From the NCBI RefSeq assembly GCF_001194135.2, contig NC_068993.1, forward strand, positions 24,510,720-24,574,719: a DNA stretch of 64,000 nt, read 5' to 3'. The stretch's first letter is position 1. Each line of letters starts with the position of its first letter. Source of the DNA: Octopus bimaculoides (lineage: Eukaryota). The notes under the pieces were generated by a model. The model made no database searches and was not told the DNA's origin. It saw only the letters and a program-made list of their open reading frames with translations. A program made the position numbers and the translations under genes. Shown piece by piece: positions 7,050 through 58,200 of this stretch.

Positions 7050-7890
7050 CTTTTTCTCTGTTTCTGTTGTTGTAGTAGTTTGTGTCATCTTAAACATTGG
7101 CATTTTCAATTATTTGTTTGTCTTGCCTCACTTTTCTGGGATTTGTTACTTGTTTTCAAACTTTTTTTTTCAAATCCCATGAACGATATTCTGTTTCTAT
7201 GCTTGCATTTTATAACCATCTCAGAGTGATTATTTATCACGCTTTCCCTGGATGTTATTTTTCTCAGGATTTCTTCACTGCATATGTTGAATACTCGTCA
7301 AGTCTCGTTATAAGGTGAAGCATTCTTTATAATTGACGAGTGGATTGTGTATTCCACTCCGTTCTGTTTTAGCCTCCAGACGAAGTTCGATACACATATA
7401 GAGTGTCGTTTGTTTATATTGATTTCTCAGACGATTTTTGATGGTGTCTGCGGAACTACCAATGTATACATATTTCTGCGTATTTGCCTTGACCTCAAAT
7501 TTGTACACTACATTCTGTATCATGAATTTGTTGCCAAATCGAAATTCGTCTTTACGTCTGAAGTTAATCGTGATACTATTGTTTTCTTTCTATCCGTAAT
7601 CGTGCACTCATTTTCCTCATGTATGCATTGTACTTCTAACTGTGAATGTTGTTTGAGTTTGATTTTGCTATTGATGAGATTTTACTACCACTATTTTCCA
7701 CCGTTCTATCATTGAACACAGTTCTGTTAGGTTTGTTTGGTTTAAATACCTCCTCTGGTAATATTCTATTAAGTTCTATGTTATTTAGTTTGTGTATGGG
7801 GTACCCTAGACTATGAGAAGTTTCCTATGCTAGTTTTATATTAGTCTGTTTATGATTTTGTGATATTTGGAAGATATATATATATACATA
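7050..7890 (-). mobile_element. Penelope-like retroelement fragment (GIY-YIG endonuclease end)
   Basis: QNVVYKFEV...KYVYIGSSADTIKNRLRN (7308-7523) is a GIY-YIG motif, followed by C-terminal KCKHRNR. Confidence 0.75.
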
Positions 7891-17899: not shown

Positions 17900-18590
17900 A
17901 GAATTATGAAGAGGGGCGTCTTCGGCCCGAAAACATTTAGCGCTGGTGTCAGAGAACATAAAGCGTTGGAGGTGTGAAAAGTGTGCCTGGTTATGTCAAC
18001 CATCCGAAGTCTCATGAAATCCATGAAAGATCAACTCTATGCAATGCGTTTCTCCAATGTAGCGTGTGAAATGCTTGCAAGTCGATTTCAAGTCTGAAGA
18101 TATAACAGTTCACAGTGATCATATCTAACAACCTGGTCCGATCCATATAGATCTGCAGTGGAACTGCATAATCATCTGAGAGTTCATTGACGGAATATCT
18201 GAAATGTCATTGACAACGTGGAAGCTCGGAGAGACGACAATCGTCTGTGAAGGGGGAACAATCATGATGTGTATCTACTCTTCAAACGGCGCAACCGAGA
18301 TGTATCTCCCAATGCTGCACCAGGAACTTTTATTATCCTCAAATTTCATATCGAATGTCTGTATCAATAACGTTCGATGTATTTGAGTACTCGTCGTCCT
18401 ACAATAGACTGCGGAAGCTTCCAAAGCATATTGAGATTTCCACTTCTGATATTTCTATCACGAAGCAGTAGCCAGCAAAGTCTACTCAGTGTTGCAGAGT
18501 AAGATAAGAAATAATGGAATCTTCCCGTAAATCTCCTTTGTGTATTTGTGCAGACGGACAGAGATGTTGTGTGTTCTAATGGGAATTCAA
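17900..18590 (-). mobile_element. Probable very old Penelope-like fragment
   Basis: YIGET on the minus strand near 18050 and a PLQIYMDRTRLLDMI stretch resembling the PLE linker; the similarity is weak. Confidence 0.35.
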
Positions 18591-19975: not shown

Positions 19976-20799
19976 TTTCCCTCGCTCTTTTGTCTTTCAC
20001 CAGTGTCACCCAGTTTTAAAATGGCACTTGATAATGCCTCTGTATAGGCTGTGTCTTTCCGTACAGCAAATCCATAACCTTTCAAATCGAATGGATTCCC
20101 GATTTCCATAAGATCGCATTTGTCAGCAATTTCCCATCGAAGTGTCGGAGAATCCCAGATAAAGGCATATTTGGTGTTTCTTGCTCTAGCTAATCCTTCC
20201 TCTACCCTTTGTACAATGCTTTCGGGATTATATCTCATATGGAGCCACATCTTACTATAATGACTAATATTGGTGTGCTTGAAAAAGTCTTCAATTTGGC
20301 TCTCATTTACCGTTCCATAGTCATATGTTGTTTGATATGCTAGGTCTGCTGCATTTTCTATTGGTAAGTAAATGTTAGTAACAGTGAGAAAAGCAGCAAG
20401 ATTGGCTGTGTACACAGATATGATAATCAGTGAAAAAAGCCACCATGAACTACTTATGATTCTACTAGATACTGCTAACGGGGAACTCTTAAGACTTCCA
20501 CGTAGTAATGTTCCCCATATGTACCAAAAGCTCTCGAGGAAGTTGTGCGTATATTTGCGGTGTTTGTCAGAGTTGACTCGACTCACGCCAAACAATGCAA
20601 GGCTGACCACGAGAAAGGATAAAAATATTCCAATCCACACATAGTTTGATAACGGAAATAAAAACTGAAACATCCACACTGTTCTCTGTGGCTTCTTTAC
20701 GACCACTGTGGTACCTTTCGTCATGAATGACTTGGTAAAGTCCACCACTTGGGATCGCTCAGGGGTAACGCTAAATGGTGCCAAAGCAACATCAGCTTT
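19976..20799 (-). CDS. iGluR exon G (824 nt): end of S1, M1, M2 pore loop, M3, S2
   Basis: tttcag acceptor, KADVALAPFSVTPERSQVVDFT...VYTANLAAFLT...YGTV...AFIWDS...KGYGFA...ILKLGDTG, then aa|gtaagt donor. Phase 0 in, phase 2 out. Confidence 0.96.
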
Positions 20800-20802
20800 C
20801 TG

Positions 20803-20810
20803 AAATAATA

Positions 20811-20860
<50 letters not shown>

Positions 20861-20911
20861 CAGCAACAGCAGTAACAACAGAAATAATAATAATAATAAT
20901 AATAAGAATAA

Positions 20912-21001
<90 letters not shown>

Positions 21002-22748: not shown

Positions 22749-22970
22749 ATTATCAATTAATTCTCGAATCATTCCTGTCCAACCTCTTTTTTTCTTGCTG
22801 CCAAATTTTCCATCGGGTGCGAGATAAATTTCAAATTGAAATTTCAAAATCTTTGACATGGCTTTCAGTATATCGATGCAAAACCCCTCCAACTGCAGGC
22901 TATTTCTGGACTTAACTGGATCATCGTTTAGATAGTCGGTGGAATTTCTAACTTGAACAAACGGTGGTTC
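22749..22970 (-). CDS. iGluR exon F (222 nt): S1 lobe
   Basis: ttctattcag|EPPFVQ...LEGFCIDILKAMSKILKFQFEIYLAPDGKFGSKKKRGWTGMIRELIDN|gtaagc. Phase 0-0, joins exon G in frame (DN|KAD). Confidence 0.96.
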
Positions 22971-26713: not shown

Positions 26714-26842
26714 TATGATGGTTACTACTCTAAGAGGTTTCGTTCCAAAGATGTCTCCGCGGTACCGTGGAACACTGCTAACACTTCGATTGATCATAAT
26801 TCTCAAATCTCTGGTCTTCGGACCGCTACGCCAGGTACTGCG
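26714..26842 (-). CDS. iGluR exon E (129 nt): ATD-S1 linker and start of S1; not in the ORF track
   Basis: tcttgtcttag|RSTWRSGPKTRDLRIMINRSVSSVPRYRGDIFGTKPLRVVTII|gtaagt. Phase 0-0; LRVVTII|EPPFV is the canonical S1 start. Confidence 0.92.
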
Positions 26843-35975: not shown

Positions 35976-36765
35976 TATCTATATTGTTATTTAATTGATC
36001 GCATCCATTTCCGAGTAGGTTTATCTTAACCTTTTTGATGCGACTCTACTCTATACCGTTTTCTCCCCCATCCTTCTCTAATTCCCTTTTTCTCCCCTTC
36101 ACCGTTTTCTTTCTTCCTCTCTCACCTCGCTTTCACTTTTTCTCCCATTGCTCACATGTTATTACCGTTCTAGGGGCTGAACGTCTTCTATCTTTTCTCT
36201 TTTCAAAGAAAATATTTATTCCAGCGTTCACTACTTTCTCCTCGTTCTGATCAAATGACCCTCCATGTTTGTTTTTCGGTTTCCTTGTATGTCTCCACTG
36301 CCCTGTTTTTGTTCCCAACTTTAACTCTCCATAAATCCAAAATTTTATTTTGGAAGTTATGGGAGCAACTGTCTTCGAAGCCTCATATTGTCGTTGAATG
36401 CTCGAAATGAGGAGTAGATAGACAGCCGAGAACTGATGAAAATAAAAGTTTGAAGGATATTTAATTTGACACTAGGACTGTTTGTTTGCAGATTCTATGA
36501 TGGCGTTTATCGTCTTCTCTAAACTGTAACAAATAGCACCCAATTGGTGTCTTGAACGTAAGGCACTCTAGTAGCAAAACTGCTAGTCTAAAGCCTGTAG
36601 AAAACATACTGATGTGAAAGAACTATTGTCTGGAGCTAACTTCAGTATTGAATTTCTATCATATATTTCCTAGTATGAGCTCACCCAAAATTATTATCCT
36701 GTCGCCCATGCTGGGTGCCAGGTGAATACGAATTTCCTTCATCCTCAAAGATAACTTCTCTACTC

Positions 36766-40330: not shown

Positions 40331-40740
40331 GTGAACACACAACCCACCTCAGAGTATCAGAACCCACATCATAATAGAAGACACTATAATTCATTTAATT
40401 ATAATGATAATAATTATACTAGGCAGAGTAGGAACAACTCGGTGAGGAAACAGGAATTTGTTTGCTTCACCCCTCCTATTTCCGCCCAAGTCAGTAACCT
40501 CCCGAATTTTATTTTAGGATTATTGAAAGTTGAGGTTTCAACCTTTTATGAATCAAAGAAGATATACATAGGAAGTACGGCTGACTTTAAGACTAGATAT
40601 AGGGCGCACACAAATTCATTTATTACTCAAGAAACAAAAAGCCACAACCGCACTAGCTACCCACATTTATAAATTTAAAATGTCCAATAAAGAATTCAGT
40701 CTGGATTGGTCTATTACAACGGAAACCACATTTAAATTTT
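40331..40740 (+). mobile_element. Internally deleted Penelope-like element
   Basis: FVCFTPPISAQVSN (IIWFNPPxS-like) is joined directly to KKIYIGSTADFKTRYRAHTNSF (GIY-YIG) and followed by LDWSI. Confidence 0.7.
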
Positions 40741-44204: not shown

Positions 44205-44309
44205 CGAGCCATTGTGCATACCACCAAGAATGATAAGTTGGAGAAACTCTTCTTTGCGAACTTGGTTTTGTTGAAAAGATAGATGACCCGTACAACCGTC
44301 TTTGTGAAT
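44205..44309 (-). CDS. iGluR exon D (105 nt): end of the ATD
   Basis: ttttctattttcag|IHKDGCTGHLSFQQNQVRKEEFLQLIILGGMHNGS|gtaatg. Matches the ATD-terminal GLTGxIxFxxxGxR..LxII pattern; phase 0-0. The frame differs from the ORF-track call 44065-44295. Confidence 0.88.
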
Positions 44310-52149: not shown

Positions 52150-52790
52150 AACGGACTCGAAGTAATATCTCCTGTTTAGCTCATGCCACCGGAAGCGAAA
52201 AACATAAAAAGAAATATCGCCTTTAATTCAGCAAGGAATATTTGCACAATAGAATCTGATAGAAATACTCGGGACCTCCGTCTTCAAGACCTCAGAACAA
52301 CACTAACTAAAGACAATATCCACTCTTGCTTATAGACTATGAACTTAAGCGTGCAAAGAAATTAGGCATTAAAACACCAAAGGCAACAAAACGTAACACC
52401 GTCCCTCATCTTAAAACACTACCGTATATTTCAACTGACAACCCTAAAAACAATGGGGCATACAACACTATTGTAGAAAACCTACCGATGTTCACTAGGG
52501 ATCCAAAAATAAACAACTTTTTGAAAACACATAAATTCATCAAATGCAAAAACCAACACAACTCGCTGAAATTTCTTCTAACAAATGCGAAGCTTTACAC
52601 AACAACCACAAAACCAACGGTTCAAAATGTGGACGCCCAAACTGTGGAACATGTCTCAACCTACTGGAAGGTTCGGAATTCCTATTCAACCAAGAAGATA
52701 AGTTCACAATTAAAACCAACTTCACTTGTGCTACTGAGAATCTAATTTATATTATAACTTGTTTAGGTTGTGGACATAACACTATAGTTA
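52150..52790 (+). mobile_element. Penelope-like element fragment (RT thumb, zinc knuckle, GIY-YIG N-half)
   Basis: [25 protein letters not shown]; KFIKCKNQHNSLKFLLT; KCGRPNCGTC...FTCATENLIYIITCLGC. Confidence 0.85.
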
Positions 52791-52829
52791 AGTATATGGT
52801 TAACAAACTGCCATAGTCTATGATAAAGG

Positions 52830-54078: not shown

Positions 54079-54321
54079 CGTTTGTATTGGTAACCCTAAT
54101 GTAGAGTTAGATTCGACTTTTGTTGAGTTCTCATTTGTTGAGTCCATTAATTCCATCGATAAAAGAAAAGCATCGTGAAGTATTGCATCAGCTAAGGACA
54201 GGTTTTTATCAGTTAACATAGTTTCTGTACATTGGGACGAATTTTGGTCTACCATGAGCTGAAGCAATGTTACATTAGGATGCGCCGGAATTAGATCATC
54301 CAAATCTACTTCCTCCAGTCC
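54079..54321 (-). CDS. iGluR exon C (243 nt): ATD
   Basis: tacttttctag|GLEEVDLDDLIPAHPNVTLLQLMVD...LADAILHDAF...LGLPIQT|gtgaga. Phase 0-0; NVT and AILHDA match the ATD motifs N(I/V)T and AL.YDA. Confidence 0.85.
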
Positions 54322-54749: not shown

Positions 54750-55838
54750 TACAAGTAGGTATGACCTAAATTTTTACCAATTGAAATGCAAGTTTTAGTG
54801 ACGGAGGACAGAATCAGTTGTTTATTACAATGTAGAAGGTTCGTGTGTTATATGGGGACACGAAATTATCAGTACATTGCTCTCTTCAAACCAATTAAAA
54901 AGTTTCATGGGGGAAATATACCGATGTATGGCAGATAAAAAGCTAAGACAAGAAATCAAATGACATGCAGTTATGCAGCCTCTAAGCAACATCAGGTGTT
55001 GGAGTGGACTATCAGAACTGTGGTGCACAAGGACATTCAATACAGATTTTATGTATTGAAGAGAGGCCAAATCAGATTTGCAAGGGCACAGGAAAACCAT
55101 CTGATCCGTGCTAAGCAGTTACTTAACAAGATTAGAAACCCTCACGAAAGGACATGTTATGGTTCTTTTCTCTTGCAAAAAATTTCGACCAGGACCAAAA
55201 GTCTTGACGAGAGAAATGATAAATGGTTATGCGCAGATCGTTCTTTCGTCCCTAGAGTGCAAAGACAGTTACTGAAACCTTTGATATTTTTAGGAGTGGT
55301 CGCCAACAGTATTCACTCTAAAACAGGGTTTTAGAATTAATACTGCTGGATTCGTTGAGGTGCTGGAGACAGTTGTTAAACATTTGATGGATGAAGTACA
55401 GTGGAAGTCCGTGTTTTAGGAAGATTCAGCACATTCTCACAAAGCTCACCGAATCCAAGAGTGAATGTCAGAAAACCTTTACGATCAAGTAACACCAAAC
55501 ATGTGGCCTTCAAACTTGCCAGATTTAAATCTCATTGACTACTACGTTTGGAACGATGTTGAAAACGAGACTAATCACTATCCTCGCAATACAAAAGTTT
55601 CCCTGAAGGCTGCTATTGTCCAAGTGTTGTTCGAAATGAATAAAGGCCATTTGATGCAGGCATGTCACCGGTCCCACGCTGAAGCAGTCATCGATGCTGA
55701 AGGCGGGTATATGGATTAAACTTATACTAAAGCTCATCGGAAACACCGACAGAAGTATTTATTAAAATTCATTGTTTTTTCTCTTCTTTCTTTTAGTAGA
55801 TTTGAGTCGTTTTATTAAATTACCGAATAGTCCCGTAT
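54750..55838 (+). mobile_element. Decayed Tc1/mariner-superfamily transposon, DD37D (maT)-like
   Basis: IRTVVHKDIQYRFYVLKRGQ, NDKWLC, vfQ(E)DSA.SH and WPSNLPDLNLIDYYVW...EAVIDAEGGY (WPxxSPDLNPLDY-like). Ends are approximate. Confidence 0.8.
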
Positions 55839-57143: not shown

Positions 57144-57197
57144 CATGTTGACTACTAACCAGTTATATGGATACGACATCATACTTAGCAATAGAGC
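57144..57197 (-). CDS. iGluR exon B (54 nt mini-exon): ATD; not in the ORF track
   Basis: ctcatttcag|ALLLSMMSYPYNWLVVNM|gtaagt. Phase 0-0; fits the conserved Q|AxxxGMxxxxYxW/Y position between exons A and C. Confidence 0.85.
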
Positions 57198-58018: not shown

Positions 58019-58200
58019 CTGTTTAAGTATTCGTGTAACAGTGACAGAGTCACAGATGACAATATATTGATTAAAGAACTGAGAACGAGTAATCTTCAGG
58101 TAGCGTATTATCTCAGGTATGCTGCGTTTGTCTGACGTGATTTTGGCAGCCTTTACATCCAGTTGGTAAATATGAATAAGTTTCTCAACCAAAAGGAAGC
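58019..58200 (-). CDS. iGluR exon A (182 nt; most 5' exon found): ATD
   Basis: cttttacttgtag|gc FLLVEKLIHIYQLDVKAAKITSDKRSIPEIIRYLKITRSQFFNQYIVICDSVTVTRILKQ|gtaaag. Phase 1 in, phase 0 out; IVICD..ILKQ is an ATD motif. Confidence 0.8.

Follow-up and report, generated by a model that had tools for sequence, protein, structure and literature searches.

The segment at positions 20146-20319 (minus strand) of a 64,000-nucleotide stretch of Octopus bimaculoides DNA (contig NC_068993.1; the whole stretch is hereafter called the window) encodes the lower lobe (S2) of the agonist pocket in an ionotropic glutamate receptor (iGluR) subunit that is full-length, expressed and constrained; the pocket has residues like those of relatives that sense glycine, D-serine or gamma-aminobutyric acid (GABA), and is probably not of the glutamate type. 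By its sequence, the gene is placed in a spiralian AKDF (non-NMDA) lineage, within a mollusc-wide clade that lies outside the AMPA, kainate and true Delta receptors. What is described below is thus a known kind of receptor pocket in an unstudied mollusc-wide orphan family, and not a new kind of system.

Ligand pocket

Translated on the minus strand in frame 0, the segment gives exactly YGTVNESQIEDFFKHTNISHYSKMWLHMRYNPESIVQRVEEGLARARNTKYAFIWDSP; it begins with YGTVNESQIEDFF, ends with KYAFIWDSP and corresponds to the S2 lobe of the iGluR ligand-binding domain (LBD). It is harboured by one 824-bp exon (19976-20799, minus), which runs from the end of S1 (APFSVTPERSQVVDF) through the membrane segment M1, the pore loop and M3 (VYTANLAAF) to take in all of S2, and which matches Pfam Lig_chan (PF00060, E=3e-29) and Lig_chan-Glu_bd (PF10613, E=9e-9). 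The defining traits of the iGluR superfamily are present, namely a clamshell split by M1-pore loop-M3, the YTANLAAF gate and an upstream amino-terminal domain (ATD). The same exon encodes APFS (20770-20781), TPERS (20752-20766) and ILKLGDTGE, and a stand-alone open reading frame (ORF) with identical exon ends ('…LEGK' and a stop) is found in many molluscs. The pocket features within this exon are as follows.

20146-20319, minus: segment from the alphaF motif to the beta10/alphaI motif of S2 (translation)
20293-20301, minus: alphaF motif S-Q-I (AGC CAA ATT) at GluA2 G653-S654-T655 (alignment)
20152-20157, minus: beta10/alphaI motif W-D (TGG GAT) at GluA2 L704-E705 (alignment)
20755-20778, minus: S1 upper-lobe P-F-S (P478-L479-T480) and the alpha-carboxyl Arg (CGA, 20755-20757; R485) (alignment)

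HMMER aligned the large exon with GluA2 at E=4e-60 and without gaps across either motif, pairing 'ygtvnesqiedff' with 'YGTLDSGSTKEFF' and 'yafiwdsp' with 'YAYLLEST', and therefore placing S-Q-I at G653-S654-T655 and W-D at L704-E705; a 199-sequence MAFFT alignment puts both motifs in the same columns. P-F-S falls at P478-L479-T480 and an Arg at R485 in the HMMER alignment. An earlier note on this DNA, made from the letters alone, had read the segment in this way, and its residue assignments stand: the alpha-carboxyl Arg (TPERS) and the P-x-S/T motif (APFS) are both present and in frame, S-Q-I occupies the predicted columns, and the Trp-Asp pair lies in an AFIWDS identical to that of GluN1 (PDB chain 9jnn_A) and similar to the AF(V/L)WD of GluD, as seen in the 'AFVWDA' of GluD2 (PDB chain 6lu9_A).

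Read at 13 positions on the GluA2 ruler (450, 478-480, 485, 650, 653-655, 704, 705, 708 and 732), the octopus pocket is F-P-F-S-R-V-S-Q-I-W-D-T-Y. It shares three of these residues with GluA2, four with GluK1, five with the Asterias delta, six with GluD2, seven with GluN1 and eight to nine with the receptors of amphioxus, Ptychodera and the sponge Sycon that combine S-Q-P with W-D. Across the alignment, the 120 AMPA and kainate sequences carry G at 653 (118), T or S at 655 (all), E at 705 (117) and W at 704 in no case, and the 73 other AKDF-type sequences carry S at 653 (56), W at 704 (56), D at 705 (63) and Q at 654 (28). The octopus protein does not match the AMPA/kainate-type pocket, G653-(S/A)-T655 with (L/M)704-E705, lacking all three of its marks (Ser stands at G653, Ile at T655 and Trp-Asp at L/M704-E705); the alignment thus shows Ile655 and Asp705 where a glutamate-type pocket would retain Thr and Glu, and Thr655 recurs in only three gastropod orthologs of the mollusc clade. 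It does match the Delta-type pocket, S653-x-(V/L/I)655 with W704-D705 (S-A-V/W-D in GluD2, S-S-L/W-D in Asterias). Since S-x-hydrophobic with W-D is also found in GluN1, GluE1 and a sponge AKDF receptor, the match is not diagnostic of Delta.

Published work links this combination of residues to ligands other than glutamate. Under the rule of Ramos-Vicente and colleagues (2018), S653 with a non-polar residue at 655 predicts a glycine-type receptor, and S653 with W704 predicted the glycine gating of amphioxus GluE1, which was then confirmed, glutamate and aspartate being inert (PMC6307864). Wang et al. (2026) reported that the alphaF motif of GluE1 is S-Q-P, that the glutamate-selective receptors they aligned all begin the alphaF motif with G, and that conversion of GST to SSV or SAV in GluA2 drastically reduces glutamate potency and confers responses to Gly, Ala and D-Ser (PMC13648236). 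A starfish delta with SSL and WD prefers GABA (PMC10861852). The claim of a published non-glutamate signature in the pocket is accordingly borne out, both by the 2018 rule and by the split of motifs across the 199 sequences. The earlier note's remark that Gln at position 654 is unusual does not survive, as Q is the commonest residue there among AKDF-type sequences other than AMPA and kainate and is also found in hemichordate, amphioxus and sponge receptors and in the glycine-gated GluE1 (PMC13648236).

In terms of mechanism, the retained Arg485, Asp705 and Glu402 equivalent would form a clamp for the backbone of an amino acid, so that such a backbone could be held. Trp704 would fill the space that the glutamate side chain takes up, as it does in GluN1, GluD2 and amphioxus GluE1, and Ile655 would remove the hydroxyl that binds the gamma-carboxylate; the likeliest ligand is thus a small amino acid that bears no distal carboxylate. 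By analogy with characterised receptors, glutamate is on balance not expected to be the main agonist. Glycine is the best single guess, itself a tentative one, and D-serine, alanine and GABA are live alternatives.

Of the receptors tested for function, amphioxus GluE1 alone is reported to combine Ser653, Gln654 (alphaF-SQP) and Trp704; it is a glycine-selective homomer lacking any response to glutamate or aspartate (PMC6307864, PMC13648236). GluE1 differs from the octopus protein in belonging to the Epsilon subfamily, in having Pro655 rather than Ile, in carrying Q and D at 586 and 590, and in its strong inward rectification. GluN1 (PDB 9jnn), the glycine/D-serine co-agonist subunit of obligate heteromers, shares with the octopus protein the 'AFIWDS' motif, F450, P478, S653 and a branched hydrophobic residue at 655; unlike it, GluN1 is of the NMDA subfamily and has Asn at the pore N site and Ser654, and the octopus protein is closer overall to GluA2/GluK. 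Delta receptors (rat GluD2, PDB 6lu9/2v3u; starfish AcaGluD) resemble it in W-D at 704/705, Ser653, a hydrophobic residue at 655, the S1 motif 'TP(D/E)R' and membership of AKDF, and have as ligands D-Ser/Gly in vertebrates and GABA in invertebrate deuterostomes (PMC10861852). They depart from it in Q at the Q/R site, D/E at +4, Tyr450, Ala/Gly478 and Ala/Ser654.

Within the mollusc clade, W-D is present in 19 of 20 members (the remaining one is gapped there), Q654 in 19, S653 in 18 and I655 in 16, with T at 655 in three. The T480 position (20770-20772, minus), an upper-lobe ligand contact that is Thr in most iGluRs, is Ser in cephalopods, a chiton and some bivalves; the clade's gastropods and pteriomorph bivalves have Gln there. 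Further afield, an identical combination of S-Q-P and W-D is found in the hemichordate Ptychodera, in amphioxus and in the calcareous sponge Sycon, which suggests that this signature is very old. W-D with S-x-hydrophobic spans a sponge AKDF receptor, deltas, spiralian clades, GluN1 and GluE1, and so has the look of an ancestral state and not of something new in octopus, the G-S-T and L-E of AMPA and kainate receptors looking derived.

Phylogenetic placement

Orthologs with 58-63% identity over the LBD-channel region were found in gastropods (Aplysia "GluR6", Haliotis, Patella, Lottia, Gigantopelta and Nucella), bivalves (Crassostrea, Mytilus, Argopecten, Dreissena, Mercenaria and unionids) and one chiton. 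A second group, here called clade 2, is ~41-45% identical and has S-G-I/V with W-D, and nemertean and annelid relatives have S-Q-V with W-D and variants thereof. Trees were computed from 386 LBD and channel columns of the 199 MAFFT-aligned sequences by Scoredist/neighbour joining (NJ) with bootstrap. The set consisted of named database proteins, 141 representatives from an exhaustive HMMER search, and GluD2 (6lu9) and GluN1 (9jnn) from the PDB; the top 120 of an alignment baited with GluD2/GluN held orthologs and GluN3 and no GluD or GluN1, and these segments were checked on PDB chains instead.

The mollusc clade received 98-100% bootstrap under all eight settings, and its union with clade 2 and the nemerteans 86-94% whether the 13 pocket columns of the full alignment were kept or removed, against 40-80% on subsets restricted to the LBD or to the transmembrane domain (TMD). 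The split between AKDF and NMDA receptors was recovered at 97-99% (78-90% on domain subsets), and AMPA plus kainate as a monophyletic group at 91-100% (60-99% on domain subsets), with the octopus protein outside it. Likewise, the octopus clade falls outside the GluD2 clade (94-100%, full alignment), which also contains the deltas of Xenopus, Ciona, amphioxus, Saccoglossus and Asterias and a nemertean "delta-1-like" protein; the nemertean thus has a separate true delta-like gene. A sister relation between Delta and the octopus clade appeared at 15-38% in full-alignment NJ runs, and no order of the three groups exceeded 67%.

Constrained maximum-likelihood (ML) analysis (29 taxa, a BLOSUM62-derived reversible model, four gamma categories and optimised branch lengths), evaluated by resampling of estimated log-likelihoods (RELL), gave 0.78 for placement with AMPA plus kainate, 0.17 for placement outside both groups and 0.05 for placement with Delta, the last being disfavoured and not statistically rejected (log-likelihood difference 4.05 +/- 3.74). 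Of the earlier suggestion of a delta-like or lineage-specific receptor, these trees with AMPA, kainate, delta and NMDA sequences support the lineage-specific part, as a spiralian/mollusc clade, and speak against delta-like kinship. The resemblance of ILKLGDTG to GluD1 ILELQDTG, once offered as a sign of such kinship, was given no weight, as it involves too short a stretch of a variable helix.

That the rest of the protein is non-NMDA-like is upheld by the AKDF-NMDA split and by its best PDB sequence matches, GluA2, GluK2 and GluK3 (E 1e-60 to 1e-57). An NMDA-type subunit is excluded by phylogeny, the octopus protein lying outside the NMDA clade in the NJ trees, so that its likeness to GluN1 is confined to the pocket. 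An AlphaFold2 model of the LBD-M1-M3 region (60-sequence alignment) had a mean predicted local distance difference test (pLDDT) of 86, with LBD blocks mostly above 90, and the best Foldseek PDB matches were the LBD-TMD of GluK2 (40% identity) and of GluA1-4 (E~1e-37 to 1e-35); at the level of a model, this confirms a non-NMDA fold and offers no finer discrimination of subfamilies. Among the 150 nearest representatives, an IR25a-like sequence was not seen when judged by motif, which is a weak argument, and an ATD-less IR-like receptor was ruled out by the presence of ATD exons.

A named ortholog is Aplysia californica GluR6, which, along with mollusc orthologs automatically named 'kainate 1/2/3-like' or 'U1-like' at NCBI, groups with the octopus protein at 98-100% bootstrap and is 49% identical to it over the full length (~61% over the LBD-channel region). 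The two share a large S1-M3-S2 exon, W-D, S-Q-x, the Arg at the Q/R site and the ATD-LBD-TMD architecture; Aplysia GluR6 has S-Q-T and Gln at T480, where octopus has S-Q-I and Ser. Labels in the literature disagree: GluR6 was classed only as an 'orphan' by Greer et al. (2017) (PMC5225553), Zeng et al. (2021) reported Phi and a mollusc-only "Zeta" class in molluscs (PMC8437780), and Rosano et al. had a number of protostome genes branching at the base of Delta (PMC10861852). None of the class labels (Phi, 'Zeta' or protostome delta) could be tied to the octopus clade; in the Ramos-Vicente supplements, Lottia 111488, Capitella identifiers and the NCBI accessions used here were absent, as were clade-specific peptides from the part of the alignment that was covered. 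No Phi subunit has Q586 (Ramos-Vicente, PMC6307864), a feature with which the pore Arg of the octopus clade is in keeping, and a Phi link is only a lead.

Gene model, transcription and constraint

The large exon is 100% identical to UniRef A0A0L8I6N7, a 547-amino-acid model that omits four ATD exons present in the window, is devoid of M4, and has terminal exons at 36166-36432 (minus) and 18015-18200 (minus) that lack homolog support. This public O. bimaculoides protein is a mis-predicted fragment of a ~850-amino-acid protein; the model is wrong and unsuitable for cloning or phylogeny. A complete ortholog exists in O. vulgaris ("glutamate receptor U1-like isoform X2", 850 amino acids, 98% identical), with signal peptide, ATD (PF01094), LBD, M1-M4 and a C-terminal tail. 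Mapped on the window, it yields seven minus-strand exons covering amino acids 160-748, all with GT-AG borders and, once spliced, forming an open frame of 585 codons (splice borders are marked by a slash below).

58019-58200, minus: ATD exon, amino acids ~160-222 of the 850-amino-acid O. vulgaris ortholog (tblastn 95% identity; acceptor ..tag/G, donor CAG/gtaaag)
57144-57197, minus: ATD exon, amino acids 223-240 (tblastn 100% identity; acceptor cag/GCT, donor ATG/gtaagt)
54079-54321, minus: ATD exon, amino acids 241-321 (tblastn 95% identity; acceptor ctag/GGA, donor ACG/gtgaga)
44205-44309, minus: ATD exon, amino acids 322-356 (tblastn 100% identity; acceptor tcag/ATT, donor TCG/gtaatg)
26714-26842, minus: exon with the ATD-LBD linker and first S1 strand (…RYRGDIFGTKPLRVVTII) (tblastn O. 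vulgaris 98%, Nucella 45% identity; acceptor ttag/CGC, donor ATA/gtaagt)
22749-22970, minus: S1 exon, first half (EPPFVQV…DGKFGSKKKRGWTGMIRELIDN), with the E402-equivalent Glu at 22968-22970 and Phe at the Y450 position at 22803-22805
19976-20799, minus: large exon, end of S1 to …GERQKSEGK (donor AA/GTAAGT)

The ATD exons were revealed by tblastn with the O. vulgaris ortholog, gastropod and bivalve relatives having detected neither these nor M4. With the O. vulgaris query, the M4 exon and the first ~159 amino acids were not found within the 64-kb window; as the O. vulgaris gene spans ~274 kb, the 5' portion and the M4/C-terminal exons are taken to lie outside it. Five sequencing runs yielded ~3.7-kb contigs, free of introns, that carry the complete ORF of an 847-amino-acid cephalopod ortholog (90% identical) and were therefore taken as assembled mRNA. 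Against this distant cephalopod transcript, synonymous divergence is saturated, for which reason only the proportions of nonsynonymous (pN) and synonymous (pS) differences are given: pS is 0.76-0.92 and pN is 0.037 in M1-M3, 0.07 in S2, 0.12 in S1 and 0.20 in the ATD, with 0.087 for segment 20146-20319 (pS saturated at 0.89). S-Q-I and W-D are identical in the transcript. The gene is real, expressed (as judged by the transcript of a related cephalopod) and under strong purifying selection.

At the end of the large exon (19976-20005, minus), the cephalopods (O. bimaculoides, O. vulgaris and the cephalopod transcript) have 'GERQK(S/I)EGKWW', unlike other molluscs, Aplysia GluR6 among them, and other iGluRs, in which a hydrophobic helix 'GILYRLE(G/R)KWW' precedes M4; its counterpart in AMPA receptors, the flip/flop helices, has a shaping influence on desensitisation and on the LBD dimer interface.

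The window as a whole is ~33% GC and contains microsatellites and assembly gaps. A ~200-bp (TAA)n/(TTA)n microsatellite at 20803-21000 abuts the acceptor of the large exon and constitutes its pyrimidine-rich tract on the minus strand, and the introns are broken by similar microsatellites and by 11 N-gaps (3317 N in total). A degenerate mariner/Mos1-type transposase remnant lies downstream of the receptor exons (142-900, plus), with Pfam Transposase_1 at E=4e-18 for the ORF at 473-685 and a weak Mos1 helix-turn-helix match for 142-513. Short intronic ORFs at 40331-40672 (plus), 7308-7523 (minus) and 52544-52816 (plus) have motifs like those of GIY-YIG nucleases ('IYIGST…', 'VYIGSS…'), two of them with sub-threshold Pfam GIY-YIG matches (E 0.002-0.01) and the third with no Pfam match at E<=0.01, and may be decayed Penelope-like or other repeat elements. 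By eye, an ORF at 55465-55719 (plus; '…WPSNLPDLNLIDYYVWNDVE…') resembles the C-terminus of a Tc1/mariner-type transposase; it has no Pfam match at E<=0.01.

Pore, linkage and a possible partner

Two further elements of the large exon concern the channel.

20488-20502, minus: pore-loop tip; the Q/R site is Arg (CGT, 20500-20502) and the +4 'D590' site is Lys (20488-20490) (alignment)
20389-20412, minus: M3 gating motif YTANLAAF (translation)

Arg occupies the Q/R site in all 20 members of the mollusc clade and, being encoded in the octopus genome as CGT, is not a product of editing. The acidic residue at +4 is lost across the clade, with Lys in cephalopods; the corresponding two residues are Q and D/E in clade 2, in the deltas and in most AMPA/kainate sequences. 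Edited GluA2 and GluK2, which bear Arg at the Q/R site, have a lowered conductance and neither Ca2+ permeability nor polyamine block (PMC13520880). The octopus protein resembles RNA-edited GluA2(R)/GluK2(R) in this Arg and differs in that the residue is genome-encoded clade-wide, the +4 acidic residue is missing and the pocket is not of the glutamate type. By analogy, the Arg at Q/R and the lack of an acidic +4 residue predict a pore of low conductance, impermeable to Ca2+ and free of polyamine block, and the subunit would quite possibly act as a component of heteromers and not as a strong homomer, a modulatory role being plausible as well.

On the 167-Mb chromosome CM100985.1 of the bivalve Sinanodonta woodiana, ~190 kb separate the mollusc-clade ortholog from a clade-2 paralog, both genes being on one strand. 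Hints of the same linkage come from Batillaria, where the locus tags are neighbours, and from Dreissena and Ostrea, where the genes share a chromosome. This suggests an origin by tandem duplication and possibly a functional pair. It is conceivable, at long odds, that the two represent an ancient linked AKDF pair, one (clade 2) with a glycine/GABA-type pocket and Q pore and the other (the octopus gene's clade) with a similar pocket and Arg pore, that forms heteromeric channels for a transmitter other than glutamate.

Alternative explanations

Despite the agreement between the pocket and published signatures, several points weigh against a non-glutamate ligand. The orthologs of Aplysia, Nucella and Batillaria keep Thr655 (S-Q-T) and four heterodont bivalves have G653 (G-Q-I), so the mollusc clade is not uniform. 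GluN2, which is a glutamate-binding subunit, carries Asp at position 705, its row of the 199-sequence alignment reading GST/YD. The ligand assignment for the mollusc clade draws on analogy, as do the inferred heteromeric assembly and low conductance, for which the models are edited GluA2/GluK2. Nematostella Epsilon 5500937, whose alphaF motif is also SQP, gives responses to glutamate and aspartate and none to glycine, so that the ligand is not readable from sequence alone, and exchanging these residues in delta and placozoan AKDF receptors left selectivity unswitched (PMC13648236). The Nematostella receptor and the Thr655 of three gastropod orthologs lend some credence to a subunit gated by glutamate (or aspartate) in which Ser/Gln/Ile and Trp-Asp tune affinity or kinetics, as do the full glutamate potency retained by GluA2 upon G-to-S substitution and the glutamate selectivity of a cnidarian AKDF receptor with GSL (PMC13648236), the overall sequence, closest among solved structures to GluA2/GluK2-3, and the slight ML preference for an AMPA plus kainate sister. 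Such gating is nevertheless considered unlikely: Trp704 is foreign to the AMPA plus kainate clade, where G653 is missing in just two sequences; in the alignment of Wang et al., LE, ME, YD, ED and TD occur in glutamate-selective receptors and WD only in glycine-selective ones, and SSV/SAV substitutions drastically cut glutamate potency in GluA2 (PMC13648236); and GluE1, with the same S, Q and W, passed no glutamate current (PMC6307864).

Somewhat less probable again is that the protein is not a conventional agonist-gated channel at all and is instead an orphan (non-conducting or constitutive), a GluD-like organiser, a ligand-inhibited leak akin to that of a placozoan AKDF receptor, or a silent modulatory partner. 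Very low cation conductance would follow from Arg at Q/R with Lys at +4, and homomers of edited GluA2 behave likewise (PMC13520880); vertebrate deltas bind D-Ser/Gly without gating, and an oyster 'protostome delta' (Rosano et al.), which may belong to a different clade, gave neither currents nor surface expression (PMC10861852). The exchange of the helix before M4 in cephalopods ('GILYRLExKWW' to 'GERQKSEGKWW') and the linked paralog clade with a Q pore as a candidate partner point in the same direction. On the other side, the YTANLAAF gate, the backbone-binding Arg/Asp/Glu and the four membrane segments are conserved under strong constraint, the pattern expected of a ligand-operated channel subunit. 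A decaying or mis-assembled gene fragment (pseudogene), in which the odd residues would reflect relaxed constraint, could be imagined from the truncated public model, with its unsupported terminal exons and missing M4, and from the absence of an M4 exon in the window; it is effectively refuted by the seven open exons with canonical splice sites, the complete O. vulgaris ortholog and the 274-kb gene that explains the missing ends, the full-length transcript in another cephalopod, a pN far below pS, and the conservation of the motifs across molluscs.

Significance

AKDF receptors other than AMPA and kainate were still called "mysterious" in 2026, very few having been tested (PMC13520880). Given its conservation from chitons to cephalopods, its transcription and constraint, and its combination of a small-amino-acid-type pocket with an Arg pore, the octopus gene is a concrete candidate, within reach of cloning, for either a non-glutamate excitatory receptor or a modulatory subunit of the molluscan nervous system. 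Were the doubtful idea of a linked AKDF pair to prove true, the pair would constitute a Ca2+-impermeable (even partly anion-permeable) excitatory glycine/GABA system in spiralians, or else a co-agonist arrangement of the GluN1 kind, either of them with an evolutionary origin separate from that of NMDA receptors, in invertebrates with large brains such as the octopus. For the family at large, the gene lends support to the view that W-D with S-x-hydrophobic may be the older state and that the glutamate selectivity of AMPA and kainate receptors may be derived.

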